This document shows, piece after piece, positions 1 to 51,983 of a DNA stretch of 64,000 nucleotides; the stretch's first letter is position 1; each line of letters begins with the position of its first letter. The DNA is from Blastocladiella emersonii ATCC 22665 (taxonomy: Eukaryota > Fungi > Blastocladiomycota), in the NCBI GenBank assembly GCA_025594325.1, contig JANHCV010000008.1, positions 620,001-684,000 on the forward strand. Direction: 5' to 3'. Made by a program: the position numbers and the translations under genes. The notes under the pieces were generated by a model. It was not told the origin of the DNA. It saw nothing but the letters and a program-made list of their open reading frames with translations, and searched no databases.

Positions 1-153
1 GCGGATCACGGCCTGCACGACGAGCAGGAGCTCAGCGGTGTCGGCCGGCAGCTGCTGCGTGGACAAATATTGTGCAAGGTTTTCGCCGAGACTCCCGGTT
101 GGCAATGGCATAGCTCGCGCGAGTTCGTTGCATGGAGTGCGCGAGGTATTCAT
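1..153 (-). CDS. 5' start of a Gag-like ORF (mirror of 16370..), running out of the window
   Basis: Reverse complement of 16370-16522 (MNTSRTPCNELARAMPLP...). Confidence 0.55.
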   Translation of the reverse strand, partial: MNTSRTPCNELARAMPLPTGSLGENLAQYLSTQQLPADTAELLLVVQAVIR

Positions 154-254
154 GGCAAGGGTGGTGAGCGTGGTCGCATGTGGTGCGGAGAGCGAAGTTC
201 GGCGGCAGACGCGTCACGAGAAAATGAGCGCCGCGTCGAACCCATCAAGGCATT

Positions 255-368
255 GGAGGGTTTGCGGGGTTTAGCAAGCAAATCCTGAGCAAGCGAATCC
301 AGAGCAAAACGCGTGCAAATCCGGTCACGCGGGGACCGCGTGGGCCTCAGCCACCCCGGTGCGCCTTC
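255..368 (+). repeat. Left TIR of the Harbinger element
   Basis: Reverse complement of 6471-6584. Contains the hairpin CACGCGG-(N3)-CCGCGTG and short iterated TTGCTCAGGAT-like motifs. Confidence 0.9.
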
Positions 369-609
369 GTGTCGAGCGCGCCGGAACACGTCGACTCTCC
401 CCATCGTGCCTCGACCGAACGTACATCATGGATCATAATTATACTTGAGGCACCTAAACGCTTCGCGTTTGGTTGTCAATCGAGGGCTAAAGCCCCCGCC
501 ACGTATGGTGCACGACTGATGGAGGTGCTGTCGCGTGCGTCCCGCACAGGAGATTTAGGTGATCGAGCTATGGAAATCGTGCTATCGATGGATTAGATGA
601 TGGAATACA

Positions 610-3380
610 CTACGTTAATACTCTACTGTGTTTTCTGTTTCTTGGCGTTCTGTGAGCCTCCTCGCCTCCAGCACGTTTCTTGGCCAATCGCCGAAACCTT
701 GCGTTGAGAGCATCAGACGCGCGCTCGGCGACTAGCTTTTCAGCCGCGTGCTGGCGCGAGAAGAGAATCGCGTCGTCGAAGAGTTTAGCGATGCGCGGGT
801 TGCCTGGTGCGATGGCTGTACCTTGATCGAAAGCGGTCTTGGTCAGCTCGTCGAGCATCTGGAGCCGCTTGTCCTCGGCCACTGCGAGTGGATCCGGCTT
901 CATGGACTTGAGCACGGCTCTTGGGATCGGCTGAAGCACACACAGGTACTTTGAGCGACGAAGCCGCGATAACGCCACGTACAGGGAAGCGCCGCTGATG
1001 AGACGCTCCATGCCCGCGGGACGCAGATCTACCAGGGCGATGGCGTTCTTGGTCCCGCCTTGAACCCCGTGGACCGTCATGGCGAAGGCTGGCACCATCG
1101 GGTGCTTCTCGATGTGCGCGACGACATGATTAGGATACTTGCTCCTGTTGGTCTTGGTGTTGTTGTTGACACAGAGCGGGAGCGAATCCCCCGTTGTGCT
1201 GACGACCCGCTCTCGCGATGTGGAACCGCCCGCCATGTACAGGAAGTCCTTCCTCTCCACGGCAAGCGGGATGACCGTGTCAGGCCACGCGGCCGGCATG
1301 CCTGGGAAGCGAGGGCCACGAGGAGCGTCGGGCAGGTCGATCCACACGTTGAGTGGAGCGCAGGATGGCCGGTACATGTTGGACGCGGTTCGCGTGAACG
1401 TGGTTTCGGGCTTCCAGTCGATGTGGTGCACGACGCCAACCGCACCGTTCGCGCACCCCTTTGCTACGCACTGGTTGGTCTTGACGCGCATCTCCATTCC
1501 GACAAAGAGCTCGAGGATGGCCGGCAGTTCAGTCGTGGTTTCTGGCTCTCCTCCGAGGCGGAACACGTCCTTGTCGCAGATGGCGACGCGTTCACGCGTG
1601 CGGCGCCTATCACGCGGGCGCGTGATGCTGCCCTTGATCTGGTACACGATGCGGTTCGGGTTTGCTGCTGCGAGCCGCGTGTCGAGCAGGTTGAAGGCGT
1701 GGCGCGTGTGGTTGTCGGGCGCGATAACCGTGAGTCCGGGCTTCTTGAGGATCTCCTTGAGGACGTTGATGCCGTTTTCGTCGACCTGCTGCTGAAGCTG
1801 AGTGGTCGTACGCAAGTTGATCAGGTCGCACAGCGTGTCCGACGCCTTGACGAGGCGGAGCGCGTCCACTTCGTTGCCCCATGGTCGATCGTCAACAAAT
1901 CGGTTGCTCTTCACGAGACGAACAGCGCGTGTAGTGCGCCAGTACGCGACCTGGCCTCGATCCACGTGCTCGGGGACCGTCAATTGATTTGACGTCATGC
2001 GCAGGTAGAACGAGTCCGGCGCGTCGTTGAGCACGGCGGGCACCTTGTACAGGGCAGTTCCGTTGACGGGAGGCAGCTGTAAATGATCGCCAGCGAGCAT
2101 GACGATGCACCCGCCGAATGGTTCGTCGCACCGCCGCAGGAGGCGCAGGTTCGCGTCGATACGGCCGAGTAAAGTCGCGTCGCACATGGAGAACTCGTCG
2201 ATGACGACGCCGAGACGTCCTTTCCACGCGATGACAACCGCAGGATCGGTACGCAAACGGGCCACGTCCGGGCTGTTTTTTTTTTTTGGCCTTAGCGAAA
2301 AAGAGAACGCGGCGTGGATGGTCGTACCGCCAATGTTGGCGGCCGCGATCCCGGTCATGGCCATGACCATGAGGCACTATTCCCGGTTCCAGGACGCGAG
2401 AAAGTATCGGATCGCATCGACGACGCGCGACTTGCCCGTGCCGCCCGAGCCGGTGAGGATGATCGGCGTCCGGTCCTTGCTCATGGGCGGGAGGGCCGCG
2501 GTGCCGACGACATGTTGGACGTCGTCGCGGCCCAACAAGATCACGTTCTGCTCGGCCGAGGCCGCAGCGTCTGCGATACCCGCGTTGCCGCCGATGAAAG
2601 TGTCGATGAGCGGCATGAGGAAGAGCACGAACGCGCGGTGCTGCTCTTCGTTGAGGTTGAACTTGAGCGAGACCTGCGCGAGGCTCGCGTACGCGGGCGT
2701 GTGCACAGTGCGCTGCTTCTCGTCGCTCCACTCGTCGCCGCGTGTGTCGCAGGCAAAGTTGCTGATCGAGTCCGCGGCCTTGGTGACGAGGAACCGCGCG
2801 CGCGCGTCAGGATCCGTTGGCGTGGTCGTGAAGGCGCTGCGCCAAACGTCGACGGCTGGTCCGAGTTCTGGTTCGGGCACGTCGACGGCCATTTACGGGT
2901 CGATACCATGCTGAGATGTGTTTGTCGAGGCTCCAGATGGCACTGCGGGAACAATACCGATCATGGGCGGCTGCCCTGGCCCGGGAACGACAGGTACGGC
3001 GCCGACATCCGCAGTCGGATGACCTTGAGCCGCGGCAGCGCATAGTTGAGCCATGATCTTCTTGACGTCAGTCGGCGAGATGGGTGTCTCGAGGTACGGC
3101 GGCGGATGCGCGGCGTTGACACCGAACGGCTGCACGTCGGGGAAGAGCAGGGTGCCCATCATGCCGTGGCCCATTCCAGGGATCAGCGTAGAGGTCACGC
3201 TCTTGATGCGCTCGAGGTTCGCCTCAGTTTCGCCGTTGTCCGCCAGGATGCCCTCCACGTCCGAGTTGACGATAGTCGGGTCGAGAGCAATGTCGTTCTC
3301 CGACTGACCGACGACGCCAAGCACGGGTCCGGCTCGCGCAACGCTGACGGCACCGCCGCGGCCGCGGTTCCTCTGCGACG
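610..3380 (-). pseudogene. PIF1-family (SF1B) helicase of the Helitron element, copy L; two in-frame stops, 5' truncated
   Basis: Motifs LNEEQ, TGSGGTGKS (Walker A), MTGIAAANIGGTTIH, IDEFSM, AGDHLQLPPV, AFAMTVHGVQG, YVALSR. ORFs 2893..3582, 2377..2892 and 610..2370 share one frame, separated by TAA and TAG. Confidence 0.88.
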
Positions 3381-4189
3381 TGAACGCGTCGGACTCGTCA
3401 GAATCCGACGACGACCCGGGCTTCCCCGGCGACGAGGCCTTCACCTCGGCAGGCGTGCCGCACACGATGAAGGGCATGCGGGCCGAGCTCAACGAGGCTA
3501 CGGAGGTGTACCACGAGTGCATGCGCGACGGCTGCGAGAACTTTGTCAACAACCTCGCCGCGCACCAGGCCGCCCGCGCCACGGCAAACGGCGTCGCATC
3601 TGGCGCCGCTGGTCACGGTGTGCAGCAGGTCGCCGCCTCGATTGCCGCGGAACCCGCGGCGCAGCAGCTCACGATCCAGCAGCCCGTCGACATCTCGGCC
3701 GCCGTCGTCTCGCCCGCCGCGGCGCCCGTGACGCAGGAGCACGCGATCCAGCCACTCGCTGTCGTGTCGCCCGCCATCAACTCGCCCGCCAACACCAAGA
3801 ACGCCGGCGGCAAGAACACCGGCACCAAGAAGTACGGCGGCTTCCCGAGCTGCGCGGACCCCATTTGGACTCACTCGTTCATCGCGATCGGCAGCATCGA
3901 CAAGATCGTCGTGGGGGTGCCGGACTCGAACTCCGTGTCGGTCGGGTGCGACATGGAGGACGCGGCCGCAGCTGCGGCTCCGACAACCGCGGCGCTTGCG
4001 GCGTGCACGCCCCCCGCCATCGGTGACGACCAAGCCGGTGTCCCGACGTCTACCGCCAACGCGACGAAGCGCACGGCGGCGACCGCCGCCGCGGCCGCCG
4101 AGGAGGAGCACGAGGAGTGCGTCGTCAACGACGAGCATGAGGCGCAGCCCAAGCGGCGCCGCAGCGGCCGCCTGTCCTCGTCGACCTGA
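3380..4189 (+). CDS. Unknown low-complexity ORF inside the Helitron, antisense to the helicase; probably a 5'-truncated fragment
   Basis: 269 aa with strong G/C third positions, an Ala-rich linker and a C-terminal basic NLS-like PKRRR. Begins at GTG back-to-back with the helicase frame. Confidence 0.5.
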   Translation: MNASDSSESDDDPGFPGDEAFTSAGVPHTMKGMRAELNEATEVYHECMRDGCENFVNNLAAHQAARATANGVASGAAGHGVQQVAASIAAEPAAQQLTIQQPVDISAAVVSPAAAPVTQEHAIQPLAVVSPAINSPANTKNAGGKNTGTKKYGGFPSCADPIWTHSFIAIGSIDKIVVGVPDSNSVSVGCDMEDAAAAAAPTTAALAACTPPAIGDDQAGVPTSTANATKRTAATAAAAAEEEHEECVVNDEHEAQPKRRRSGRLSSST

Positions 4190-4597
4190 TGCACTCGCTC
4201 CCGCCCCGACTCTGTTCATTCCCCTCGCGCAGACTCGCGCAGACTCTTGTTTCCTCCCACACAAAGATATACTTTTCGTTCTCCTACGTTCACATCGCTC
4301 CGATCCTCTTGAACTCAGAAGCTCGCGAAGCACGCGAGTCGGTGCAACGCGCTCCGCTCGCCCTTGAGTGGTTGGCGCCGCGCGGCGCTTCCGCGGGTTG
4401 GGCCGAGGCCGATTACGTGCAAGGCCAGGACGCGTTGCGCCACAGCAGTCACATGAGAAACGACGCGTCTGTCACGCGTTTTTGGGTCGCTCACGTGGAT
4501 CGCGCTCACGTGAGCGTCGGCACCCTATCCGGCAGCGACCCGGTCTAGAAAGAGGGCTTTAGCCCTCGATGGACTCTTTCTTGCTGCAATAGATCTC

Positions 4598-5735
4598 ATG
4601 AACGGCCAGCTTGCTCCTCAGTTCGCGCCGCCCGAGGTGGTCCAACTTGCTCAGGCGCTTGTGCGACAGCGGGAGCAGCGGGCGCTGCTGATGCACCAAG
4701 CGCGCGTCGCCGCGCTCCTTGCCCCTCGCCCAAAGCCTCACGGCAGGCAGATGTGACGACAGCAGCCGTTTGTTCTTGACGAGTTCAATGACCGAGACTG
4801 CTGGGCCAAGTTCCGCTTCCAGCGCGACGACATCCGCTACCTCGCGCACCAACTACTGCCAGAGTATATCGTGTTGGATGTCCGCCACGCACCCGTTCAC
4901 TGTGAAGTCGCGCTGTGCGTCCTGCTCCGCCGCCTCGCGTATCTGTGCCGACTTGGTGATTTATGCCCAATCTTTCCATACGATGGGTCGGTGCTCTCGC
5001 GGATCATAAACACGACGCTCCGCCAGATCATCCAGACCTGGTCGCACCTTCTGACTATCCGCGTTGAGGCGATGCCGCCACGAGCGCTGCAGCAGTTCGC
5101 TGCTGCGGTCCATGCTTCCGGGGCTCCTGTACAGCACTGTATCGGCTTTCTTGACGGCCCCATCAAGTGTATCGCTCGTCCGGTGGCGATAACGCGGTTC
5201 AGCGCAACGTTTACACGGGCCGCAAGCGCGTTCATGGTCTCACAGTGCAGGGCGTCATGGCGCCAAACGGTCTTTTTATCGATGTTCGCGGCGTGTGGCC
5301 GGCCTCGTTCCACAACGCCAACGTTCTTCGTCGCTCCCAGCTTCTTGACCGCCTTGCACAACTCCCTCTCGCACCGGGCGGTCGGCCATACTTTCTTTAT
5401 GCTGACTCGGCGTACCCCCGTGGGTCCGACCATCCTGACGCCGCCCCGTGGTCGCAACCTGCCCGCTGACCTTGCTGCCTACAAGCGTCGCATGTCCGCT
5501 GCGCGTGTCCGTCGAGTGGGGATTCGGCATGGTCCTGAAGGACTGGGCCTTCTTGGACTACGTCAGGAACAACCAGCTTCACATGCACCCGCTCTGCGAT
5601 CTCTACTTCGCCGCATTCCTGTTCTCAAACTTGAAGACATGCTTGTACCGGCGCAACATCATCACGGACCATTTCCAGCTGGTTCCGCCCACCGTTGACG
5701 CGTACCTGGCGGGACTGGTGTCTCTCGAAATTTGA
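4598..5735 (+). pseudogene. PIF/Harbinger (DDE_Tnp_4, HARBI1-like) transposase pseudogene
   Basis: FRFQRDDI, ALCVLLRRLAY, GFLDG (D1), YTGRKRVHGL, LYADSAY (D2), RVSVEWGFG (E), PPTVDAYL. In-frame TGA at 4754 and two frameshifts (about 5180 and 5450-5500). Confidence 0.9.
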
Positions 5736-5804
5736 TCAAATTGACAACACCTTCATGGACTCGGGATGACAGGGTGGATATCTCAATACAGGAGAGGGTG
5801 TACC

Positions 5805-6377
5805 TTACACAAAAATCGCGTCATGCGGCAGGCGCGCGAGAAGCGCGGCCTGCGCCTGCATGAGGGGCGGGCCCATGTTGAGCAGGGCGGCGAGGTGGGC
5901 GGCGCGCTGCAGGTCCGACAGGGCCGGGTCGATGACTTGGGCACCTTGACACTCTAAGCGGTGCGACGCTTCGAGTACGGCAGCCACAAGCTCGGTCGGG
6001 ACCTGGTTCGAGCACAGAACGTGGTACGTCGAGACCGCGTAGGGCAGCGCAGCGCCGGCCGGCTGGTGGTAGTAGTGCAGGGCAACAGCGTGATGCGCGA
6101 TGGTCACGGCCATGTCGACTCCCGGCGGGGCGCCGTCGTTGAGGGTGTTGCGGCCACCGCGCCCGCCGCCGATGTGCAGCACAGGTCCTCCCACGTTGAG
6201 GACCAGACCGCCGCCGAGTCCGGCATGGGGCGCGGACACCGTGGTCGGCGAGATGCCCGGGGCCGGGATTAGCGCTGGCTGCGCGTGACCCGGTCCGTGC
6301 TGCTTTGGGTACGCGAGGCTGAGCGGCAGCGGCGGCGGGCAGCTGGACGCCATGACGGAGTCAAGAATGCATTGCAT
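5805..6377 (-). CDS. Second (accessory) ORF of the Harbinger element; no Myb/SANT motif recognised
   Basis: 190-aa ORF convergent with the transposase and inside the TIRs, the position of the Harbinger DNA-binding ORF. Confidence 0.4.
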   Translation of the reverse strand: MQCILDSVMASSCPPPLPLSLAYPKQHGPGHAQPALIPAPGISPTTVSAPHAGLGGGLVLNVGGPVLHIGGGRGGRNTLNDGAPPGVDMAVTIAHHAVALHYYHQPAGAALPYAVSTYHVLCSNQVPTELVAAVLEASHRLECQGAQVIDPALSDLQRAAHLAALLNMGPPLMQAQAALLARLPHDAIFV

Positions 6378-6470
6378 AGGCTATGCCGCCAGGGCATGTA
6401 GTGGTTTCGCCTCGATGAGGGGCGTGAGGGGACGAGCGAGTCGGGCAGGCGACGTCAAGGAGGTGGAGCG

Positions 6471-6584
6471 GAAGGCGCGCCGGGGTGGCTGAGGCCCACG
6501 CGGTCCCCGCGTGACCGGATTTGCACGCGTTTTGCTCAGGATTCGCTTGCTCAGGATTTGCTTGCTAAACCCCGCAAACCCTCC
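6471..6584 (+). repeat. Right TIR of the Harbinger element
   Basis: Inverted match to 255-368; direct match to 16155-16268; followed by ATT. Confidence 0.9.
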
Positions 6585-6732
6585 ATTAAACTATATTTCG
6601 CGAAACCGACATCACTCTGGCATCGCACAGCCTTCGTCAAAGAACGGTTCGAGGAGGAGACGCAACCGCTCCTGACTATTCGATCCAAGATTACAAACCC
6701 GCTTCATTCCGATCTTTCTCAGAGCTCATCAA

Positions 6733-8283
6733 TCACCGGCACAAGCAGCCGAAGGATCCGCGCTCGGTTTTGCGCCTCCAACTTCCGGACCCTCTCAAGT
6801 ACATGCCGCGCCAGTTGGACCGTGAGCGGAGCCAAAAGCGCCTTGGACAAGACTTGGCCGTGTCAACTCGCTCCGATTCCTGCTTGAGCTGCCGCCAGTC
6901 GATCCTCATGAGGCGCATTGCGACAGCGACCGTCTCAGATAACGCCCGAGGATGTATGAGAAGTGGGCACACGTGAAAGGTGTGGAAGCGGCAAGACGGA
7001 GGGCAAAGGTCGACAAACCGTGTACAGAAGCAGCACCCGGGTTGCACCGACAACATATTCGGCTCAACGCGATACGATGGGAACGTGGTCTGTGCGAAGG
7101 AGGCACTCATTTCTGCAACGTTGCCGGCCGGATCCCACAAGATTGCGTAGAGATGTTTTGGTTTCGGCCTCAGACAGATGAGAAGCCTTTCGGCGAAGTT
7201 GGTCTTGATTGGCCACGTCCGCTCAAGCGCGCTTGAGTACCCAGGCGCGGCTTCCTCGAGCAAGTCATGAAAGCGTGCATAGAAATCGGTGATAAGCATG
7301 CCAGGCGTTCGCGCCAGGCCGAGCCAGCGAGCGGCCCAGTCGCGCCGCGCTGGATCGGCTGGATTAATTGAATCGAGGAAGATGCGCTCGGCCTCTGCGT
7401 CCGACGCGTCGAAGCGAAGAAAGACCGAGTAGACATAATGTACCGTCCGCGTCGCGTTCCAGCTTGATGCGAGAAGTGCGGTTGCAAGCGAAACGGGGAA
7501 CGGGGAGCAGTCGGGAGATGACGCGATGCGCCACAGCGAGGCAAGGAAGTCGTGCGGGTCGTTGGTATCCAACAGATCCGTCTGATCAAGCTGCCGAAGC
7601 CGAGGGCCAAACTTGTCAAGGTGACGCCGCAGTGATTTAAGGTCCATATGTGAAATTTCGGGCAGGTGCTCCGTAAGTTGCGCAAAGCCCTCATGGCGAG
7701 GCAAATGTACGGCAAACCTTGAGCCGGGAGAAGGAGCGCGTGCACAATTGCGAAGCACAGCTGTAGAGCTTGTGACGTCCGCGTATGACACGAGCAGGGG
7801 ATGGGCTTCAGTCGTTTGGGTCGCCAGATGGGCCTGCTCAAGGTCCACTGGATTACGCGCCGTCAAAGCGCCGTTGGAAGAAGATGACTCGAGATGCTTC
7901 ACAGCAGGCGTGTGTTCGATCACAACGTTGGCCACGCCCGACCTGGTAGCCAGCCGCTGCGGCTTGGCAGCACCATGAGTAGGCTCCAAAAGTAGCCGCA
8001 GCCGCAGACGAAGCTGTATCGACTCGAGGCGCACCCTCAAGAGATCTTTCAGCGACTGCTCGTGCTGCTCCGCCGGCACCGGCAAGTCAAGCGCAGAGTC
8101 CGCGGGGTTCGATGAGAGGCAAAATTTGCTTGACGCCGTGCTTCCGCGGGCTGGCACAGACTTGCCAGATAAATTGCATAAAGTTTCATGATGATTCATT
8201 GCGAGCTGGATGTGGGATACGAGTCGACGCTGAGTGCTGTTCGTGCACGCGTCCCCCCTGTTCTCACGAAGCAACTTCCCCAA
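6733..8283 (-). CDS. Gag-like protein B with extended CCHC knuckle; C-terminus possibly frameshifted
   Basis: WLGLARTPGMLITDFYARFHDLLEEA...IKTNFAERL resembles the retrotransposon Gag C-terminal capsid signature. Knuckle CCFC-X13-H-X4-C. Homologous to 16370..18094 and 10597..11200. Confidence 0.6.
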   Translation of the reverse strand: MGKLLRENRGDACTNSTQRRLVSHIQLAMNHHETLCNLSGKSVPARGSTASSKFCLSSNPADSALDLPVPAEQHEQSLKDLLRVRLESIQLRLRLRLLLEPTHGAAKPQRLATRSGVANVVIEHTPAVKHLESSSSNGALTARNPVDLEQAHLATQTTEAHPLLVSYADVTSSTAVLRNCARAPSPGSRFAVHLPRHEGFAQLTEHLPEISHMDLKSLRRHLDKFGPRLRQLDQTDLLDTNDPHDFLASLWRIASSPDCSPFPVSLATALLASSWNATRTVHYVYSVFLRFDASDAEAERIFLDSINPADPARRDWAARWLGLARTPGMLITDFYARFHDLLEEAAPGYSSALERTWPIKTNFAERLLICLRPKPKHLYAILWDPAGNVAEMSASFAQTTFPSYRVEPNMLSVQPGCCFCTRFVDLCPPSCRFHTFHVCPLLIHPRALSETVAVAMRLMRIDWRQLKQESERVDTAKSCPRRFWLRSRSNWRGMYLRGSGSWRRKTERGSFGCLCR

Positions 8284-8403
8284 GCGGTCACGCCAGCCTC
8301 ACCTGATATCGAAACGCGTCGATTGCATTTGGAGACGATTTTCTTTTGTCTCACTCAACGTGAGCCAGCTCGTTTAACTCCAATACTCTACAAACCGATT
8401 TAT

Positions 8404-9666
8404 TCATGCTCGGCCGCGCGAAGCAAGCCGCGGCTCAAATCGACGCGACTCCACCATGGCGTAGTCGCGCGCCTCTTCTTTTGAGTAGTGCGCTGGGGCC
8501 CGCTCCATGAAATGAACCAGCACCAGGACCTTGAAGATGTGAGTAGCGCGTTCGCCGACAGGCTCGATACGCTGCAACTGGCCGAGCATGGCGCAAGCAA
8601 GCCGAAGCTCCCGATTTTCGCAACGCGCTTCGAGTTTGCGCGAAAGCTGACGGAGCAGGCCAACGAGTTCGCTGTCTAATCGGTCAACCTCGGCCACGAA
8701 ACGAAACTTGGGCGGGAGCGGAACCGCTGGGCGGGCGCGTGTGCTCAGCGTCCGGAGCGCCATCTGGATGGTCACGGCCGCGTTCACCGGGTTCGTGACG
8801 CGATGGCATCGCCCATCGTGGTGAGGAATCGAATTACGATGTTGAGGTTTGAGTGCCTCGCGCATATATGCGCGGCAGAAGTCGCAGTCGGCGCTGCTGG
8901 TTGAGAGTGAACGAGACCGGGACCCAGATTGGGCGCCCTGGATTGGATTGGGTAGGTTGTTTCTTGGGAGGAGCAATCTCGGTGGAGACCTGGATCGGGA
9001 GTATGGGCCGTGCGACCCCGAGCTGCTCCTATCGTGACGCCGACTGCATGGAGAGCGGCTGGGAGACCGGTGGGAACGACGAGTGGAGCGAGTGCGGAAG
9101 CGAGAACTCGAGCGTTCGCGACGATGAGCGGGTACGCGAGGCGGTGAGCGGGACCGTGAGCGAGAGCGCGCGTATCCTCTTCCTCGCAACTTTGTTGCGT
9201 CATCGGCAGCTTGATATTCTTGATGATGTGAGGTAACGCTGCTCTCAACGAAGCCAAGCAAACGCTCGACCGACTGCAAAGACAATGAGATAGCGGCGAA
9301 TGTCGACTGAGCACTTGCAAGGTGTGTTATAATCGGCTGTACACAGCGGCCGAGCAATGTTACGCGGCATAAATCAAGCCGGCGAGCCATAGCAACGAGA
9401 GTCGCATCATGTTGAAGCTGGCGCAGCGCCGCGCGACCGTCGGGGAAGCGACCTGATTTCAAAGTTTCCGCGACTCGGGCCTCTGCATCGTCGAGCATGA
9501 TTTCATTCATGTTTTCATTCGCGTTGCATGGAGTCTTCATTGTTTCTTGCGTGGTCCCGCGTCGCGGCGAGTAGGACAAGGCGGACTTGGCACGGACGCA
9601 CCACTTGACGCTTATCAACCTTTGACACCGCTGCTGGTCAGCTGCCCGCGATTTTCCGCCGCGCAC
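8404..9666 (-). CDS. RS-rich protein C with extended CCHC knuckle (Gag-like family)
   Basis: RSRSRSRSPPR tracts, then CDFC-X17-H-X4-C, then TIQMALRTLSTRARPAVPLPP, which is similar to ORF 9973..10548. Confidence 0.55.
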   Translation of the reverse strand: MRGGKSRAADQQRCQRLISVKWCVRAKSALSYSPRRGTTQETMKTPCNANENMNEIMLDDAEARVAETLKSGRFPDGRAALRQLQHDATLVAMARRLDLCRVTLLGRCVQPIITHLASAQSTFAAISLSLQSVERLLGFVESSVTSHHQEYQAADDATKLRGRGYARSRSRSRSPPRVPAHRRERSSSRFRTRSTRRSHRSPSRSPCSRRHDRSSSGSHGPYSRSRSPPRLLLPRNNLPNPIQGAQSGSRSRSLSTSSADCDFCRAYMREALKPQHRNSIPHHDGRCHRVTNPVNAAVTIQMALRTLSTRARPAVPLPPKFRFVAEVDRLDSELVGLLRQLSRKLEARCENRELRLACAMLGQLQRIEPVGERATHIFKVLVLVHFMERAPAHYSKEEARDYAMVESRRFEPRLASRGRA

Positions 9667-9972
9667 CCACTCTCGCGCAACAAACCAAGACTCTTGAAGG
9701 TTGTGTAACAGATACTGGCAAAGTTAGGAACAGGGCTTCTTCTCATGGCGACCATCGATCTGACCGCCGTTGACACCCAAGGGAACTGGCTCGAAGAGGC
9801 GAGGATGTATGCAGTCAGGGACGTGTAGTTCTGTCGTCAGCTCCCGAATCGAGGCGGGTTGAAGGAGAGATGATGAGTGAAATAGCGTATATTGGCGCAG
9901 CGGGAGCGCGGTGGGTTAGAGAGACGGTCGCGGACGGAACACGCAAGATCAGGTGGTGGATCACCACTATCA

Positions 9973-10548
9973 TCATCGCATGAATGATACGTAACAGGTG
10001 TGCTGTAGAGCGGATCGGGCAGTGCTGAGCCCAAGCGCGCTCACCATGCCGTACAGTTTGTGGTGGATCTGCTTGGCCCGCAGCATGGCCAACCCGATTC
10101 GCGCCATACCGCGCAGTCCGGCTGACGTGACCCAGTGCTCGCGCGTCTCACACGACGGCTCGAGCCCCCGCGAGAGGTCGAGCACGTAGTCGGCAAGCGT
10201 CTTGTCCGCTTTGCCCGGATGCGGACGCGATCGTGGTGGCAGGACCTGCGGCCGCGCTGCGCGGGATAGCGACCGGAACGCGGTGTGGATCGCCATGGCC
10301 GCTTTCAGCGCGCTGGCGAGGCGTTCACGCAGCACGGCGTCGTGCTGTTTGACGCGCGGCAGCGAACGTAAAAGCGAGTGCTGGGCGAGTAGCGCTTCGC
10401 AGTAGCGACACTTGACGTCGCGCGTGGCCGGCGATGTGGTTGGGCTAGGCGACCTGTTGCTCGACAAGGGGTTGTGCGGCGAGCTGAGGTCTGCAGCGGA
10501 CGCGTCCTCGAAAAATCCGCGCGGCGCATTTTTTGGCCAGCTTGTCAA
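9973..10548 (-). CDS. Paralog D of ORF 8404..9666, shorter; last knuckle Cys replaced by Arg
   Basis: CRYC-X18-H-X4-R (CGT codon, one change from TGT); AIHTAFRSLSRAARPQVLPP matches ORF C. Confidence 0.5.
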   Translation of the reverse strand: MTSWPKNAPRGFFEDASAADLSSPHNPLSSNRSPSPTTSPATRDVKCRYCEALLAQHSLLRSLPRVKQHDAVLRERLASALKAAMAIHTAFRSLSRAARPQVLPPRSRPHPGKADKTLADYVLDLSRGLEPSCETREHWVTSAGLRGMARIGLAMLRAKQIHHKLYGMVSALGLSTARSALQHTCYVSFMR

Positions 10549-10596
10549 TCCGAAAACGCTGTAACCATGATTCCATTTTAATTGTCATTTCTTCTC

Positions 10597-11200
10597 TCAG
10601 AGCCCGTCAATCACGGGCCCCAGTATTTGAACCAGCCGCTGCCGATCGGCCAGGACCAGCTTAAAGATCGCTTCCAGCACGCACCGGCCTGGGTAAACCG
10701 CGGCCGGGTACAGGAACCGTTCGCGGATGTGCGCGAGAGTGCGCTCGAAAGAAATGTCAAACCGACCGTTTGCCTCCCGCTTGAACTGCGGCCAATCAAC
10801 ACCAACAGCCCGCATGGCCACAACCACCACCTCAGCGAGCGCGTACGGATGAACGATTAGCGGACAGTTGTGGCGATCGTGGATGCGAAAAGCTGGAGGG
10901 CACAGGTCAGCGAACCTGTAACAGAAGCCGCAGCCAAGGCGCGCGGTGGTGGGGGACGGGCAGCGTGTACATGGCCGTTGGGGAAGGGGAACGCGACGCG
11001 AACCAGAGTTGCGCCGACGTGTGAAACGGTAACGGCCGGATCCCACGCATGCTTGAACAAGCTCTTCGGTTTCGGGCTTAGCGCGCTGTGCAGTCGCTTC
11101 GCGAAGCCCAGCTTAAACGTCACGACAGCGCAACAGCTGGCGATAGAATCATCCTCGGCAGGGCGAAATTCATCGCCAAAAGTGGTGCCGACATGTTTTT
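10597..11200 (-). pseudogene. Gag-like family copy E, 5' truncated and frameshifted
   Basis: FAKRLHSALSPKPKSLFKHAWDP (ORF 10857..11399) and CGFC-X13-H-X4-C...IVHPYALAEVVVVAMR (ORF 10597..11046) align with ORF B in two frames. Confidence 0.7.
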
Positions 11201-11209
11201 TGATGGTGT

Positions 11210-11837
11210 CAATATTTGCCACATCCGAATCACTGAGGTTGGCGCCGCTGCCCTTGCCAAGGCCACGGTCGAAAACGGAACCATTCGCAAGGTGGTGCTC
11301 GGTCCTTGCGATATCACGTTCCCAGTACTGCGCGCGCTGCGTCTGCCAAATGTCCCGGATCTCACAACGCTGGACCTGTCGAGGAACTGGATCGGACACG
11401 GTGCGGTCGCCCCAGCACGTAGCTTTTCGTCAACGGCAGCACACTTAACAGACAGTGACGATGACATACTCGACACCCCATGCTTTCCGCCCGGCCTCCG
11501 CGCGCTTGATCTCAGATCGTGCCACTTGCGCTTCCGCGAAATCGCGCAACTTGTGCACCGCTTTCCGCCTGGCCTCGCCATCTTGTGTCTCTCGAACCAT
11601 CCGCTTGCCGACGCGGGTGTTGCCGAGCTTGCACACCATCTTCCGGCCGCCCTTGAGGACTTGAACCTCGCTTATACCAGGATCACAGATACAGGCATCG
11701 CCGCTATCATGTTGCGACTTCCTCAACGCCTCACCAGTCTTGACTTGAGCGGAAATACGGTCACTGACGCGTCCTTGGACGTGATTTTCAACAACTTGCG
11801 GCCCAATCTCACGCAGCGCACGCAGCTCAAGACGTGA
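11210..11837 (+). pseudogene. Ribonuclease-inhibitor-like LRR protein fragment, 5' truncated
   Basis: LTTLDLSRNWIG, LRALDLRSCHL, LEDLNLAYTRITDTGI, LTSLDLSGNTVT. No N-terminal domain; abuts Gag-like copy E. Confidence 0.75.
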
Positions 11838-12333
11838 ATGACGAGAATGGGTGGTGACGGCAAAAACAAGGAGTTTGTCAGTGAGTTCCATCGCCGAGTT
11901 CCTGACGGGCTCAAACTGATCATGTGTCGCTGACAGGAACGACGTCAGTCAAATCGAGGGCTAAAGCCCTCTTTCTAGACCGGGTCGCTGCCGGATAGGG
12001 TGCCGACGCTCACGTGAGCGCGATCCACGTGAGCGACCCAAAAACGCGTGACAGACGCGTCGTTTCTCATGTGACTGCTGTGGCGCAACGCGTCCTGGCC
12101 TTGCACGTAATCGGCCTCGGCCCAACCCGCGGAAGCGCCGCGCGGCGCCAACCACTCAAGGGCGAGCGGAGCGCGTTGCACCGACTCGCGTGCTTCGCGA
12201 GCTTCTGAGTTCAAGAGGATCGGAGCGATGTGAACGTAGGAGAACGAAAAGTATATCTTTGTGTGGGAGGAAACAAGAGTCTGCGCGAGTCTGCGCGAGG
12301 GGAATGAACAGAGTCGGGGCGGGAGCGAGTGCA

Positions 12334-13143
12334 TCAGGTCGACGAGGACAGGCGGCCGCTGCGGCGCCGCTTGGGCTGCGCCTCATGCTCGTCGTTGACG
12401 ACGCACTCCTCGTGCTCCTCCTCGGCGGCCGCGGCGGCGGTCGCCGCCGTGCGCTTCGTCGCGTTGGCGGTAGACGTCGGGACACCGGCTTGGTCGTCAC
12501 CGATGGCGGGGGGCGTGCACGCCGCAAGCGCCGCGGTTGTCGGAGCCGCAGCTGCGGCCGCGTCCTCCATGTCGCACCCGACCGACACGGAGTTCGAGTC
12601 CGGCACCCCCACGACGATCTTGTCGATGCTGCCGATCGCGATGAACGAGTGAGTCCAAATGGGGTCCGCGCAGCTCGGGAAGCCGCCGTACTTCTTGGTG
12701 CCGGTGTTCTTGCCGCCGGCGTTCTTGGTGTTGGCGGGCGAGTTGATGGCGGGCGACACGACAGCGAGTGGCTGGATCGCGTGCTCCTGCGTCACGGGCG
12801 CCGCGGCGGGCGAGACGACGGCGGCCGAGATGTCGACGGGCTGCTGGATCGTGAGCTGCTGCGCCGCGGGTTCCGCGGCAATCGAGGCGGCGACCTGCTG
12901 CACACCGTGACCAGCGGCGCCAGATGCGACGCCGTTTGCCGTGGCGCGGGCGGCCTGGTGCGCGGCGAGGTTGTTGACAAAGTTCTCGCAGCCGTCGCGC
13001 ATGCACTCGTGGTACACCTCCGTAGCCTCGTTGAGCTCGGCCCGCATGCCCTTCATCGTGTGCGGCACGCCTGCCGAGGTGAAGGCCTCGTCGCCGGGGA
13101 AGCCCGGGTCGTCGTCGGATTCTGACGAGTCCGACGCGTTCAC
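12334..13143 (-). CDS. Unknown ORF inside Helitron copy R (identical to 3380..4189)
   Basis: Identical translation to the 3380..4189 ORF. Confidence 0.5.
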   Translation of the reverse strand: MNASDSSESDDDPGFPGDEAFTSAGVPHTMKGMRAELNEATEVYHECMRDGCENFVNNLAAHQAARATANGVASGAAGHGVQQVAASIAAEPAAQQLTIQQPVDISAAVVSPAAAPVTQEHAIQPLAVVSPAINSPANTKNAGGKNTGTKKYGGFPSCADPIWTHSFIAIGSIDKIVVGVPDSNSVSVGCDMEDAAAAAAPTTAALAACTPPAIGDDQAGVPTSTANATKRTAATAAAAAEEEHEECVVNDEHEAQPKRRRSGRLSSST

Positions 13144-15913
13144 GTCGCAGAGGAACCGCGGCCGCGGCGGTGCCGTCAGCGTTGCGCGAGCCGGACCCGT
13201 GCTTGGCGTCGTCGGTCAGTCGGAGAACGACATTGCTCTCGACCCGACTATCGTCAACTCGGACGTGGAGGGCATCCTGGCGGACAACGGCGAAACTGAG
13301 GCGAACCTCGAGCGCATCAAGAGCGTGACCTCTACGCTGATCCCTGGAATGGGCCACGGCATGATGGGCACCCTGCTCTTCCCCGACGTGCAGCCGTTCG
13401 GTGTCAACGCCGCGCATCCGCCGCCGTACCTCGAGACACCCATCTCGCCGACTGACGTCAAGAAGATCATGGCTCAACTATGCGCTGCCGCGGCTCAAGG
13501 TCATCCGACTGCGGATGTCGGCGCCGTACCTGTCGTTCCCGGGCCAGGGCAGCCGCCCATGATCGGTATTGTTCCCGCAGTGCCATCTGGAGCCTCGACA
13601 AACACATCTCAGCATGGTATCGACCCGTAAATGGCCGTCGACGTGCCCGAACCAGAACTCGGACCAGCCGTCGACGTTTGGCGCAGCGCCTTCACGACCA
13701 CGCCAACGGATCCTGACGCGCGCGCGCGGTTCCTCGTCACCAAGGCCGCGGACTCGATCAGCAACTTTGCCTGCGACACACGCGGCGACGAGTGGAGCGA
13801 CGAGAAGCAGCGCACTGTGCACACGCCCGCGTACGCGAGCCTCGCGCAGGTCTCGCTCAAGTTCAACCTCAACGAAGAGCAGCACCGCGCGTTCGTGCTC
13901 TTCCTCATGCCGCTCATCGACACTTTCATCGGCGGCAACGCGGGTATCGCAGACGCTGCGGCCTCGGCCGAGCAGAACGTGATCTTGTTGGGCCGCGACG
14001 ACGTCCAACATGTCGTCGGCACCGCGGCCCTCCCGCCCATGAGCAAGGACCGGACGCCGATCATCCTCACCGGCTCGGGCGGCACGGGCAAGTCGCGCGT
14101 CGTCGATGCGATCCGATACTTTCTCGCGTCCTGGAACCGGGAATAGTGCCTCATGGTCATGGCCATGACCGGGATCGCGGCCGCCAACATTGGCGGTACG
14201 ACCATCCACGCCGCGTTCTCTTTTTCGCTAAGGCCAAAAAAAAAAAACAGCCCGGACGTGGCCCGTTTGCGTACCGATCCTGCGGTTGTCATCGCGTGGA
14301 AAGGACGTCTCGGCGTCGTCATCGACGAGTTCTCCATGTGCGACGCGACTTTACTCGGCCGTATCGACGCGAACCTGCGCCTCCTGCGGCGGTGCGACGA
14401 ACCATTCGGCGGGTGCATCGTCATGCTCGCTGGCGATCATTTACAGCTGCCTCCCGTCAACGGAACTGCCCTGTACAAGGTGCCCGCCGTGCTCAACGAC
14501 GCGCCGGACTCGTTCTACCTGCGCATGACGTCAAATCAATTGACGGTCCCCGAGCACGTGGATCGAGGCCAGGTCGCGTACTGGCGCACTACACGCGCTG
14601 TTCGTCTCGTGAAGAGCAACCGATTTGTTGACGATCGACCATGGGGCAACGAAGTGGACGCGCTCCGCCTCGTCAAGGCGTCGGACACGCTGTGCGACCT
14701 GATCAACTTGCGTACGACCACTCAGCTTCAGCAGCAGGTCGACGAAAACGGCATCAACGTCCTCAAGGAGATCCTCAAGAAGCCCGGACTCACGGTTATC
14801 GCGCCCGACAACCACACGCGCCACGCCTTCAACCTGCTCGACACGCGGCTCGCAGCAGCAAACCCGAACCGCATCGTGTACCAGATCAAGGGCAGCATCA
14901 CGCGCCCGCGTGATAGGCGCCGCACGCGTGAACGCGTCGCCATCTGCGACAAGGACGTGTTCCGCCTCGGAGGAGAGCCAGAAACCACGACTGAACTGCC
15001 GGCCATCCTCGAGCTCTTTGTCGGAATGGAGATGCGCGTCAAGACCAACCAGTGCGTAGCAAAGGGGTGCGCGAACGGTGCGGTTGGCGTCGTGCACCAC
15101 ATCGACTGGAAGCCCGAAACCACGTTCACGCGAACCGCGTCCAACATGTACCGGCCATCCTGCGCTCCACTCAACGTGTGGATCGACCTGCCCGACGCTC
15201 CTCGTGGCCCTCGCTTCCCAGGCATGCCGGCCGCGTGGCCTGACACGGTCATCCCGCTTGCCGTGGAGAGGAAGGACTTCCTGTACATGGCGGGCGGTTC
15301 CACATCGCGAGAGCGGGTCGTCAGCACAACGGGGGATTCGCTCCCGCTCTGTGTCAACAACAACACCAAGACCAACAGGAGCAAGTATCCTAATCATGTC
15401 GTCGCGCACATCGAGAAGCACCCGATGGTGCCAGCCTTCGCCATGACGGTCCACGGGGTTCAAGGCGGGACCAAGAACGCCATCGCCCTGGTAGATCTGC
15501 GTCCCGCGGGCATGGAGCGTCTCATCAGCGGCGCTTCCCTGTACGTGGCGTTATCGCGGCTTCGTCGCTCAAAGTACCTGTGTGTGCTTCAGCCGATCCC
15601 AAGAGCCGTGCTCAAGTCCATGAAGCCGGATCCACTCGCAGTGGCCGAGGACAAGCGGCTCCAGATGCTCGACGAGCTGACCAAGACCGCTTTCGATCAA
15701 GGTACAGCCATCGCACCAGGCAACCCGCGCATCGCTAAACTCTTCGACGACGCGATTCTCTTCTCGCGCCAGCACGCGGCTGAAAAGCTAGTCGCCGAGC
15801 GCGCGTCTGATGCTCTCAACGCAAGGTTTCGGCGATTGGCCAAGAAACGTGCTGGAGGCGAGGAGGCTCACAGAACGCCAAGAAACAGAAAACACAGTAG
15901 AGTATTAACGTAG
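13143..15913 (+). pseudogene. PIF1-family helicase of Helitron copy R with in-frame TAA (13628) and TAG (14144)
   Basis: Same motifs as copy L. ...HGIDP*MAVDV... and ...WNRE*CLMVMAMTG... are in one frame. Confidence 0.88.
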
Positions 15914-16154
15914 TGTATTCCATCATCTAATCCATCGATAGCACGATTTCCATAGCTCGATCACCTAAATCTCCTGTGCGGGACGCACGCGACAGCACCT
16001 CCATCAGTCGTGCACCATACGTGGCGGGGGCTTTAGCCCTCGATTGACAACCAAACGCGAAGCGTTTAGGTGCCTCAAGTATAATTATGATCCATGATGT
16101 ACGTTCGGTCGAGGCACGATGGGGAGAGTCGACGTGTTCCGGCGCGCTCGACAC

Positions 16155-16268
16155 GAAGGCGCACCGGGGTGGCTGAGGCCCACGCGGTCCCCGCGTGACC
16201 GGATTTGCACGCGTTTTGCTCTGGATTCGCTTGCTCAGGATTTGCTTGCTAAACCCCGCAAACCCTCC
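16155..16268 (+). repeat. Orphan, transduced copy of the Harbinger left TIR
   Basis: Mirror of 255-368; matches 6471-6584 with 2 mismatches. Confidence 0.9.
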
Positions 16269-16369
16269 AATGCCTTGATGGGTTCGACGCGGCGCTCATT
16301 TTCTCGTGACGCGTCTGCCGCCGAACTTCGCTCTCCGCACCACATGCGACCACGCTCACCACCCTTGCC

Positions 16370-18094
16370 ATGAATACCTCGCGCACTCCATGCAACGAAC
16401 TCGCGCGAGCTATGCCATTGCCAACCGGGAGTCTCGGCGAAAACCTTGCACAATATTTGTCCACGCAGCAGCTGCCGGCCGACACCGCTGAGCTCCTGCT
16501 CGTCGTGCAGGCCGTGATCCGCAAGGGCATGGATCTGCGCGCGACGCACGTTGGCCTTTCGCTAGAGTTTCGGTCACAATGCAATTCGGACGAGTCCGCT
16601 AAATCCGTTCGCTCGCGTGCGACGGTGCTTGGGATCGCGATCGCAGACCTCATCAAGCTGTGCACCTCGATTGAGCATCACTGCCGCACACGCTCTCTTC
16701 TCGGTTCTCTGACCTCGCTCTCCAAGCTGTCACTTCCGCTTCCGTTCCTCGAGCAAGCACTAGCGGCAGCCCCCGGCCCCGAACCTGGCGTCACCCTCGC
16801 GGCACCCGAATCGTCGCACCGGCGATCGTATGACACACGCTACCAGAAGCTGATTCGCGAAGAAGGGCCGCTGCTTGGCTCCCGCGGCCAAGGCAAAGCT
16901 CGGTTCGTTCCCGACTCGCACGAATTTATTGAACGCTTGTGCGATCTTGTGCCCGACATCCCGCTTGGCCAAGCGCTCTACCTCTGCCGCTTCAATGTTC
17001 CCAAACCCGTCTACCACGTCCTAGCCGTTTTTCTACGCGAATCGGCGAACGACAGGGAGGCGCACCGCGTGTTCCTCAGGGCCGCCGACCCGTACTGGCA
17101 CAGCGACTGGGTCAGACGGCTTCACCGGCTCAAGCCGTGGCCGGGCAGTACCGTCGGGGAGTATTTTGCCGAGTTCCACGCGCTGCTTGCCGAGGCGATT
17201 GATATTGACGACCCCATGATCGGCTCGGAGCGGGCGATCAAGAACGTTTTCTTTGACAAGCTGTACACCGCGCTCGGGAGTTGCGCGGATCCGATCTTCG
17301 CCATGGCCAATGATCCGTCCGCGACGATGGCTGCTGCGGCCACCCGTTTCGCTTCCCTCGCGATTCCGCACTTGGCGACGCCAGTTCAGTCCCCGACCGC
17401 TCCCCATGCTTCGTTCATCAGCCCAAAAGGCAGCTGCGTGTTCTGCGCAGCACTCGAGCTTCATCGCCCCGAGGCCATCTCTCACACCGCTCGGGTGTGC
17501 AACAACATGCACCGCGCGAATCACTTTGGCATCATGCTCGCCGAGGGTTTGTTCCTGGCAAACGTCACGGCTCCACGCAATGTTTGGAGGGGAGCTTGCC
17601 CGACGCCCGACTTGATCCAGGCCTTGATGGACTTGCACCTCCAGGTCAGCGGTCGCGCACGCTCAATGCCCCCAGGTGACGGCCAAGTCAAGGTCATGCG
17701 CTGCGCCGAGCTAATTGGAGCGCTCTTTGCGCTCCTCACCAAGAATATCTCGTTCGAGCCTCCGATTTGGGCAGTCGACGCGGTGAAGAACATTTGGCAG
17801 GCCGCACATATCCTGTCCGTCAAGTCAAACATGAAAATCTGGCTCAGTTTGTTATGTTTCGCACATCGCGCCATAAATTTTGATTGCTCTCCCATCTCCC
17901 GCGTCCACAAACGGAAAACGCACGGCATCGCGCACAGATGTATTAAAACTTCGCACGGATGTATGAAAAACATGGGGGACAGCGTAGGGCAACAACGACA
18001 CTTCACAGGAGCTCCAAGAACGCAATCACCCGGATTGTCAACTTCCCGTCAACAAACGCTTTCGGGGGTGAGCAATTGTAAGCCCAACGGTTGA
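16370..18094 (+). CDS. Gag-like protein A with extended CCHC knuckle; the last ~90 aa may be run-through
   Basis: LHRLKPWPGSTVGEYFAEFHALL...SERAIKNVFFDKL resembles a Retrotrans_gag-like signature. Knuckle CVFC-X12-H-X4-C. Intronless; no pol downstream. Confidence 0.62.
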   Translation: MNTSRTPCNELARAMPLPTGSLGENLAQYLSTQQLPADTAELLLVVQAVIRKGMDLRATHVGLSLEFRSQCNSDESAKSVRSRATVLGIAIADLIKLCTSIEHHCRTRSLLGSLTSLSKLSLPLPFLEQALAAAPGPEPGVTLAAPESSHRRSYDTRYQKLIREEGPLLGSRGQGKARFVPDSHEFIERLCDLVPDIPLGQALYLCRFNVPKPVYHVLAVFLRESANDREAHRVFLRAADPYWHSDWVRRLHRLKPWPGSTVGEYFAEFHALLAEAIDIDDPMIGSERAIKNVFFDKLYTALGSCADPIFAMANDPSATMAAAATRFASLAIPHLATPVQSPTAPHASFISPKGSCVFCAALELHRPEAISHTARVCNNMHRANHFGIMLAEGLFLANVTAPRNVWRGACPTPDLIQALMDLHLQVSGRARSMPPGDGQVKVMRCAELIGALFALLTKNISFEPPIWAVDAVKNIWQAAHILSVKSNMKIWLSLLCFAHRAINFDCSPISRVHKRKTHGIAHRCIKTSHGCMKNMGDSVGQQRHFTGAPRTQSPGLSTSRQQTLSGVSNCKPNG

Positions 18095-25535: not shown

Positions 25536-26043
25536 ATGGAAACAGAGACGGTCGCAACTTTATCAACGAACAATACGCCGACGCCACGTCGCCCGCGGCG
25601 TGGATCCCCGTCGCGGCGCCGCACACGGGCGCTGTGATCGCGCGGTGCCCCGACTCGTCGCCCGCCGACGTCGACGCCGCTGTCCAGGCCGCCAAGTTGC
25701 GGTCGCCGCCGCCGCTACGACCTGGCTGGCACTGACACGCACACACGTAGCAGGCCGCGTTCGGCCCGTGGAGCGCGCACGCTTAAGGACCGCGCGCAGA
25801 TCCTGCTGCGGTACCACGCGCTGATCACACAGTACGCCGACGAGCTCGCCGACCTGATTGTCAAGGAGCACGGCAAGACCAAGGCCGAGGCGCTCGGCGA
25901 CGCGGCCAAGGGCAACGGGACGGTCGAGTACGCCTGCTCGCTCCCGCAGCTCGCTGCCGGGCGTATCATGGGGGTGTCGCGCGGCGTCGTGTGCCGCGAC
26001 CTGCGCGTCTCGCTCGGAGTCACTATCAGCATTGTCCCCTTGG
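25536..26043 (+). pseudogene. N-terminal fragment of a methylmalonate-semialdehyde-dehydrogenase-like ALDH
   Basis: NFINEQY, DVDAAVQAA, RAQILLRYH, ELADLIVKEHGKTKAEALGD, VEYACSLP, LGV..SIVP. Frameshifts and a damaged intron; truncated before the catalytic core. Confidence 0.8.
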
Positions 26044-26177
26044 GTTGTGATCGGCGACTTGCTGGGGGCGTGACGATGAACAGGGCGACTCGTTTCAGCG
26101 GCTTCCCACGCCACGCCGAGAGCGACACGTCCTCCGCGCCCGATGTAATCCTCGGTCGCTACTTGGATGAAAAACTC

Positions 26178-31831: not shown

Positions 31832-31904
31832 TATAATATAATATAATCATTACAAGGTAAGTTGCCATGCGCGGAGCTACCCCGAGGTCGGAACGCCCCG
31901 GAGC

Positions 31905-51298: not shown

Positions 51299-51983
51299 GA
51301 TCCGTTGCTGCAAGATTGAAACCGTGGTGAGCTTGCCGCTGCTGATATCGTCCAAGTCCCGGGTAATAATAGCGTCGCCAGGCGCGACGCCGGATTCAGC
51401 GGGATGGATCAAGTCGAGCGCAACTCGCAGGAGCATAGGAACGCTCTCAGCGGGAAGAGTTCCGAGACAGAACTTGCGCCAGAACGTAAGCACGTCTTCG
51501 TCGCCTCGATTGAGCGCCGCCTCCAGCACAGGCACCGGTACACGTAAGTCAAGCCGGTACTCGCGAATTAGCTCCAACAGTGCAACATTGCCACTACCCG
51601 TGGCCTCGGAGGCACTGAAGTTCGGGCAGCGCTGAAGAACCAAGCGGGTCACCTCGGGGGCACGGACACGCGGGAGGACCCGCACATACTCGAGCAGGCC
51701 GCGCGGGTCGCGCGGGTCGTGCATCGCGACGGCGCGCAGAAGAACGTCGGCCAGGATCTCGCTCACGTCGAGTTTGCGTTGCATAGAGTCCATGGGTGTT
51801 TCATTCATTTTGGTTCATGAGCTCGCGTGTGGAGCGGGGAGAGAGCGTCGCGCGTCGTTCGGCTTTTGGAGCCGCGACTCGGTCACCCCAACGGTCAGCT
51901 TCCGCCATGTCCAACTCCGAAATCATAGTCCAGATTATCGTAAAAGATGCTTCGTGTATTCACACTCCAATAGCCCGGATCAC

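Follow-up and report, generated by a model that had tools for sequence, protein, structure and literature searches.

Within a 64,000-nucleotide (nt) stretch of the genome of the fungus Blastocladiella emersonii ATCC 22665 (hereafter the window; GCA_025594325.1, JANHCV010000008.1:620001-684000), two identical copies of a Helitron transposon, here called L and R, lie in inverted orientation on either side of a unique spacer, and the identity between them runs on past the 3' end of the element into the DNA that flanks L. Positions are those of the window, to which 620000 is added to obtain record coordinates; 6.5 kb of left flank were added from the same contig (record 613521-634189, window -6479..14189), and negative positions refer to this flank. 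The window has a G+C content of 58-72% and carries intron-poor eukaryotic genes, among them those for a HECT ligase, a dihydroxy-acid dehydratase, WD40 and leucine-rich repeat (LRR) proteins; one WD40 ORF is 100% identical to the B. emersonii protein H9P43_006737, and scans of its whole length for tRNAs and Rfam families gave zero matches. The features of the locus are collected in Table 1.

Table 1. Features of the inverted Helitron locus, in window coordinates (TIR, terminal inverted repeat; ORF, open reading frame)
Feature	Position	Strand	Remarks
Helitron copy L (donor)	439..4569	-	4,131 nt; starts 5' TCGAGGGCTAAAGCCC at 4569, ends ...CTCAAGTATAA at 439
Helitron copy R (product)	11954..16084	+	sequence identical to L
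Canonical 3' terminator of R	16028..16084 (mirror 439-495 in L)	+	GGGCTTTAGCCCTCGA 16028-16043, hairpin AAACGC-GAA-GCGTTT 16053-16067, end CTCAAGTATAA
Transduced donor flank in R	16085..17833	+	1,749 nt, reverse complement of -1310..438; last 2-4 nt may be target
Donor flank beside L, part inside the window	1..438	-	continues to -1310 outside the window
Harbinger left TIR and target duplication, copy carried into R	16155..16271	+	no matching right end after it
Chimeric ORF in R	16370..18094	+	574 aa; codons 1-488 from orphan gene A, other 86 codons from target DNA, spurious
Cryptic terminator	17820..17833	+	TCAAGTCAAACATG; compare canonical TCAAGTATAA followed by T; no hairpin upstream
Target-side 5' flank of R	11943..11953	+	CGTCAGTCAAA; ends in the A preceding TC; repeats AGTCAAA of the cryptic terminator
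PIF/Harbinger-type DNA transposon, split by Helitron L	255..6584	+	TIRs 255-368 and 6471-6584
DDE_Tnp_4 transposase remnant, twice frameshifted	~4757-5732		PF13359, E 2e-11
Pif1-like helicase remnant	613..2892 (mirror 13631-15910, +, in R)	-	PF05970, E 7e-17
Spacer between arms	4571..11952		7,382 nt, unique; rest of Harbinger, paralogs B and C, RS-rich ORF, LRR ORF
Paralog B	6733-8283	-	
RS-rich ORF in spacer	8404-9666	-	
Paralog C	10597-11399	-	frameshifted
LRR ORF in spacer	11088-11837	+	

The arms of the inverted repeat are 5,881 nt long each and perfect: between -1310..4570 in the L arm and 11953..17833 in the R arm there are no mismatches. An earlier note on this stretch, confined to the portion inside the window (1-4570 against 11953-16522; 4,570 nt, 100% reverse-complementary), had proposed that the duplication starts exactly at the Helitron 5' terminus (4569/11954), passes the 3' terminator and continues at least to the window edge, and both ends of that proposal are borne out by the longer sequence. 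The inner edge of the arms coincides with the 5' end of the element, A/TCGAGG (a slash marks a junction here and below), and the A at 4570 and 11953 is the one base that the arms share outside the TC; the next 10 bases are all mismatched, and the DNA from 4571 onward is unrelated to that from 11952 backward. At the outer edge, alignment of the left flank with the reverse complement of 16523 onward, as the note had suggested, adds 1,311 identical bases before the identity ends abruptly at -1310/17833, which is 1,749 nt beyond the true 3' terminus. The shared tract past the terminator thus measures 1.75 kb and not tens of kb, and DNA to the left of -1310 has no duplicate within the window except a 68% match between paralogs. 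In record coordinates the junctions of R lie at 631,953/631,954 and 637,833/637,834, and the length of the spacer agrees with the 7.4 kb that had been given as the distance between the two copies.

The termini of the element were set from nine copies of the family together with one pair of filled and empty sites. Eight further copies or fragments were compared with L and R, two of them in the window (~28-32 kb) and the others at the loci L001, L002, L006, L007, L008 and L010 on five other contigs. All full-length copies begin TCGAGG(G/T)CTAAAGCCC, and the 5' end by itself forms a hairpin; its TCGAGGGCTAAAGCCC is complementary to a segment located 41 nt from the 3' end (16028-16043), which forms a hairpin as well. 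A second hairpin, 17 nt from the 3' end, is conserved across the family copies, and the terminator as a whole folds at -13.1 kcal/mol (z -2.4). In L and R it carries one private substitution, a C between the two hairpins (16048/475) where the 8 other family 3' ends have an A. The 3' terminus that had been placed at 444/16079 has to be moved 5 nt further out, to 439/16084, since in the nine copies and the filled/empty pair the element ends in ...CTCAAGTATAA and is followed by T. The filled site, at L002, reads CTCTTTA, then the element (TC...TATAA), then TCTTTCAT, and in the matching empty site, CTCTTTATCTTTCAT, CTCTTTA is joined directly to TCTTTCAT. Judged from this one empty site, the family inserts between A and T without target duplication; among the non-tandem copies the 5' flanking base is A in 4 of 5 and the 3' flanking base is T in all. 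The element ends in ...CTCAAGTATAA and lacks the CTRR 3' terminus of canonical Helitron1, and on the evidence of its termini it would be classed as a Helitron with Helitron2-like ends and the canonical A/T insertion site. The other copies differ by 3-5%.

Copy L sits inside a PIF/Harbinger-type transposon, 184 nt from its left end, and is flanked there by A (4570) and T (438). The Harbinger TIRs are 114 nt long with 2 mismatches and are bounded by a duplication of ATT at 252-254 and 6585-6587, the usual target duplication of PIF/Harbinger elements being TAA/TTA. No Myb-like second protein was recognised in this element. An annotated gene of 182 aa (5805-6353, minus strand, without a Pfam match) lies opposite the transposase remnant; it might encode that second protein, or might be an ORF that arose by chance in a GC-rich region. 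A search for a second Harbinger copy, in which the empty site of L could be verified, returned the same locus only.

The arrangement around the two copies gives the direction of the transfer. The Harbinger TIRs and the ATT duplication are complete at L only, and so is the natural stop of the gene that lies next to them; the array to which this gene belongs runs on the minus strand, as does the copy of the gene at L, and the copy at R is inverted. The surroundings of R are otherwise unique intergenic DNA. Because the Harbinger, the end of the gene and the orientation of the array are intact at L, and R stands in unique DNA, L is the donor and R the derivative. The earlier note had reached this conclusion from the Harbinger alone, and the stop codon and the orientation of the paralogs now add to it.

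The flank carried in R contains the 184 nt of the Harbinger left end and a copy of the ATT duplication, followed by most of an orphan gene, gene A, of whose 492 codons 488 are present. At L, gene A ends ...SNMLSRS followed by its stop, 15 nt past the copied segment, and its paralogs end there too. The note had described the tract as running through the Harbinger left TIR into a Gag-like ORF; the TIR and the ORF are both present, and the resemblance to Gag is unsupported. The 574-aa ORF of R, searched alone, gave zero matches in Pfam and in homology searches, and the family was located through paralog B. It was seen in B. emersonii only (paralogs B and C and proteins P0156-P0158, with identities of 21-52%), and its conserved motif, C-x2-C-x12-H-x4-C, differs in spacing from the C-x2-C-x4-H-x4-C of the Gag zinc knuckle. 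A profile of the family found no match among PDB sequences, and Foldseek, given an all-helical AlphaFold model (predicted local distance difference test score, pLDDT, 70) and run against PDB and BFVD, found none below E 0.6; Gag is represented there by two entries, both at E 1.7 only. The minus-strand array (6733-11399 and -3597..153) alternates members of this orphan family (A, B and the frameshifted C) with RS-rich ORFs, a second family specific to B. emersonii, of which those at 8404-9666 and -3597..-2095 are 68% identical over 247 nt, and three more members are found on the same contig (H9P43_006799, 006800 and 006814).

The sequence at which the copied tract stops resembles the end of the element. 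The cryptic terminator TCAAGTCAAACATG begins with TCAAGT, a hexamer that is met here for the first time beyond the canonical end, at -1297 on the donor and 13 nt from the end of the identity. The earlier note had offered TCAAG/T at 17820-17825 as a weak candidate for the endpoint, and the candidate proves well placed, the identity extending 8 nt further to 17833. Within 11 kb, the pattern AAGT[AC][AT]AA occurs at the canonical and the new end only, and of the two sites in the 6.9 kb downstream that match the terminal 10-mer TCAAGTATAA at 8 of 10 positions, the cryptic site is the first. For an endpoint chosen arbitrarily, the probability of having such a site only a few bases away is ~0.003-0.005. 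The cryptic end folds no better than shuffled sequences (z +1.3).

A second relationship concerns the target. The 11 bases immediately 5' of R, CGTCAGTCAAA, match the cryptic terminator (CGTCAAGTCAAA) with one gap. The genome frequency of AAGTCAAA, taken as AGTCAAA, is at background, and a repeat of this kind at the junction would be expected by chance with a probability of ~5e-4; the AGTCAAA flank is not a dispersed repeat and is absent from the other family insertions compared. As the 5' flank of the target repeats the cryptic terminator, both junctions of R are tied to one target site, which favours a single transposition over models based on repair. The repeat may come from the specificity of the enzyme or from microhomology in the final joining. 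A general preference of the family for AGT..AA targets was considered and rejected, the flanks of the other copies giving it no support. The 3' cleavage could have taken place at AAA/CATG (the canonical register), ACA/TG (the A/T rule, with a 2-nt overlap) or CATG/A, so that the 3' flank of the target would start TGAAAATC... or AAAATC... depending on the cleavage point. A search of ~176 kb of this genome for a paralogous empty site of R found no homology.

The coding content of L and R is that of a degenerate element. The helicase remnant (Table 1) shares 26% identity over 628 aa with residues 986-1498 of the RepHel protein P0026 and is interrupted in frame by a TAG codon (2377-2379); upstream of it the frame contains three more stops, at 2893-2895, 3613-3615 and 3871-3873. 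The L/R copy has no Rep domain. Without Rep and with in-frame stops in the helicase, the L/R Helitron is, as read from its sequence, non-autonomous. Sibling copies at L006-L008 retain the motifs CRYGFPR and YATKYSTK of the Rep tyrosine-motif region, and at L008 a stretch of 415 aa can be aligned with RepHel proteins over the interdomain between Rep and helicase (E 1e-19 and 2e-23); these RepHel-like regions of the siblings imply that a real Helitron was the ancestor of the family. The 8 copies examined include no autonomous partner, and the names of distant helicase relatives are uninformative. The public annotation places "hypothetical protein" genes of 222 aa and 336 aa inside both Helitron copies (12334-13002, minus strand, and 3521-4189, plus strand; 2377-3477, minus strand); the 222-aa model, on the strand opposite the helicase frame, is probably a spurious ORF in GC-rich sequence. 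Exact protein look-ups with the 574-aa ORF, the 586-aa helicase ORF and the HECT ORF gave no match, the annotated gene models being different.

On the basis of these data, we put at about 80% the probability that a defective Helitron bypassed its own terminator and pasted itself, together with 1.75 kb of donor flank, 7.4 kb away. The sharp ends, the terminus-like stop and the L-to-R direction support the read-through interpretation that the earlier note had advanced. In the sequence of events that we infer, a non-autonomous Helitron with Helitron2-like ends, residing in the Harbinger at L, would have been mobilised in trans by Rep/helicase encoded elsewhere in the genome. The strand beginning 5'-TCGAGG... 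would be nicked at A/TC (4570/4569) and peeled off 5' to 3', the enzyme missing the normal terminator, in which two hairpins precede ...CTCAAGTATAA/T at 439/438. Displacement would then continue for 1,749 nt through the end of the Harbinger, the ATT duplication and nearly the whole of the adjacent orphan gene, and halt at the first downstream sequence resembling a terminus, TCAAGTCAAACATG. The resulting unit of 5,880 nt would be inserted 7.4 kb off, inverted, between ...AGTCAAA and (TG)AAAATC..., without target duplication and with the donor retained. Head-to-tail junctions, which support a Helitron ancestry, exist within this family.

Several observations weigh against such a reading. The bypassed terminator is structurally intact, and apart from the single A-to-C change between the hairpins it offers no obvious cause of bypass. 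None of the 8 family copies examined contains the HUH part of Rep, so that none of them would be the source of the enzyme. The point of 3' cleavage is ambiguous over 4 nt, and if all of the identity is donor-derived, the 3' flank of R starts with A, against T in every other non-tandem copy examined. Both junctions of R are taken from assembled sequence. Finally, there is another palindrome in the genome, at L002, and such structures therefore also arise or persist by other routes.

The age of the event bears on how directly it can be read. Zero differences in 5,881 nt set an upper bound of ~5e-4 per site, against 3-5% between family copies, and ATCC 22665 was isolated over 70 years ago (PMC9730499); the event would accordingly be very recent, and may even have happened in culture. 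The lack of differences is not a reliable clock, because gene conversion may homogenise the arms of a palindrome, and the palindrome at L002 is also essentially perfect, a further point against taking the identity at face value. The earlier statement that no differences are seen between the copies thus holds to the base, and the wording "caught in the act" that went with it is weakened.

Among the other explanations, a two-step history deserves the most attention, unlikely as we consider it. R would first have been an ordinary Helitron insertion, and a later break near its 3' end would have been repaired by copying L, through synthesis-dependent strand annealing or break-induced replication; synthesis would have run 1.75 kb into the flank of L before rejoining R by microhomology, in the manner of the "filler DNA" model. 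Such a history accounts for a boundary that coincides with the Helitron 5' end and for a few bases of possible overlap (CATG or TG) at the other junction; two inverted copies separated by 7.4 kb would recombine readily, and a perfect palindrome is known from at least one more place in the genome. It requires, however, two events and a first insertion already identical to L, given the 3-5% by which other copies diverge; why the tract should end at the first terminus-like TCAAGT does not follow from it, and it leaves unexplained why the 5' side of the target repeats the sequence of the 3' junction.

An artefact of assembly, in which a fold-back or mis-join by the assembler or chimeric long reads created an R arm that is absent from the real chromosome, is less likely still. 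Long inverted repeats without a single difference are a well-known warning of such errors, the evidence here is an assembled contig, and the assembly had undergone purging of duplicates and short-read polishing (PMC9730499). The assembly was, on the other hand, built with LJA from PacBio HiFi reads with a mean length of 10.5 kb (PMC9730499), and the 5.9-kb arms are shorter than the mean read at a coverage of ~186x, as calculated from the base and assembly totals quoted in that paper. The unique 7.4-kb spacer is also unlike the palindromes left by missed adapters, and both junctions fall at biologically meaningful sites, the A/TC terminus and the terminus-like motif. The same two breakpoints make an ordinary segmental duplication by replication template switching, without Helitron enzymology, the least credible of the alternatives: an inverted duplication with a spacer is a typical outcome of that process, but the joint chance of hitting the 5' terminus to the base and a terminus-like motif is roughly 1e-6 or less, and the duplication is short and bounded rather than tens of kb in length. 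Priming by fold-back at the 5' hairpin was rejected, as it predicts arms that meet at the hairpin and not a unique spacer of 7.4 kb.

Other loci of the family show structures of their own. The palindrome at L002 (L002:1-19545; JANHCV010000003.1, 2360404-2381879 reversed) is near-perfect, with a spacer of 4.5 kb and Usp genes in both arms. The arms are 100% identical over at least 2,985 nt, and a further ~175 nt contain a single mismatch; an 8.7-kb Helitron copy, itself interrupted by two nested insertions of 2.4 kb, occupies one of them, and the other has the exact empty site. In the window, 29891-31846 contains a non-autonomous Helitron of the same family (29968-31836) with a 15-nt satellite at ~31551-31745. 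It abuts, head to tail, a 5'-truncated unit ending at 29967; their tandem junction (29967/29968) reads GGCTCAAG/TCGAGGTC, without the usual TATAA, and the Helitron's own 3' end is followed by three units of TATAA. These tandem Helitrons are located between two paralogs of an LRR gene family (25968-27815, 32579-34444, 47592-48941 and 50747-51808), whose diverged tandem and inverted members are 70-89% identical in blocks. A second head-to-tail junction, CTCAAGTATAA/TTGAGGGCTAAAGCCC at L007:4944-4960 (JANHCV010000017.1), is consistent with rolling-circle tandems or with insertion beside a pre-existing end. At L001:9786-11452 (JANHCV010000006.1), a 5'-truncated Helitron fragment of 1.6 kb has the canonical 3' terminus and lies between direct repeats of 36 nt (ATTGCTTCATG...GCGGCGCA), unusual for a Helitron; it may represent an insertion that was aborted and then repaired by host functions.

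The movement of gene fragments by the thousand in plants, bats and fungi is attributed to Helitrons. Few natural cases allow parent element, flank and product all to be read at single-base resolution; at the present locus the two junctions can be read, together with the direction of transfer, the extent of the read-through and the sequence at the stop. It points to a defective element with an intact-looking terminator that was still able to transduce, gives a hint of recent Helitron activity in a culturable early-diverging fungus under development as a model, and offers concrete sites for testing the rules of termination and targeting.

Among known systems, the one-ended transposition of bacterial IS91 offers a parallel for the sequence at the stop: there, too, the rolling circle misses its terminator and stops at a sequence like the target or the terminus. 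A bolder reading along these lines, to which we assign a small chance, is that the family is active today in ATCC 22665 and that its enzyme picks stop and target by the same short sequence (AAGT..AA / AGTCAAA). Such a shared-sequence rule would explain why the last 7-11 bases of the target repeat the cryptic terminator, and would allow the end points and landing sites of Helitron captures to be stated as a rule of sequence. IS91 is prokaryotic and uses a defined tetranucleotide, whereas in the present family target and cryptic end resemble each other (AGTCAAA) in one event, and the other insertions do not share this.

No paper describing Helitrons of B. emersonii was found, and the genome paper (PMC9730499) is silent on them. 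In another fungus, FoHeli1/2 of Fusarium oxysporum (PMC5148889) resemble the present family in having a hairpin directly at the 5' TC, an inverted repeat between the 5' terminus and a 3'-subterminal position (~40 nt from the 3' end), a second hairpin near the 3' end, and ends joined head to tail. The family described here differs in its A/T insertion, as in canonical Helitrons (one filled/empty pair), its end ...GTATAA and its host among the Blastocladiomycota. In bats, where end bypass has likewise incorporated and moved host sequence adjoining a Helitron, the parental gene had a related Helitron next to it in 3 cases only, and in 26 cases none was found (Thomas et al. 2014; PMC4224331). The identities in those cases are well below 100%, whereas here the donor element, the flank and the product are all present and identical, with readable junctions.

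The mechanism itself, capture by end bypass, had been proposed for Helitrons and was demonstrated in experiments with Helraiser, a reconstructed bat Helitron (Grabundzija et al. 2016), and the locus is a clean new natural instance of it. For Helraiser, read-through is reported at 11.7% with the intact element and at least 36% without the hairpin, and its de novo 3' ends lacked a palindrome and overlapped the target by 2 nt (PMC4778049). The present case is alike in its start at the 5' TC, the bypassed terminator hairpin, the new downstream 3' end without a palindrome, the retained donor, and one or two bases overlapping between the new end and the target. It differs in being a natural event in a fungus, in its intact-looking terminator, in involving a non-autonomous element with Helitron2-type ends, and in its inverted landing 7.4 kb away.

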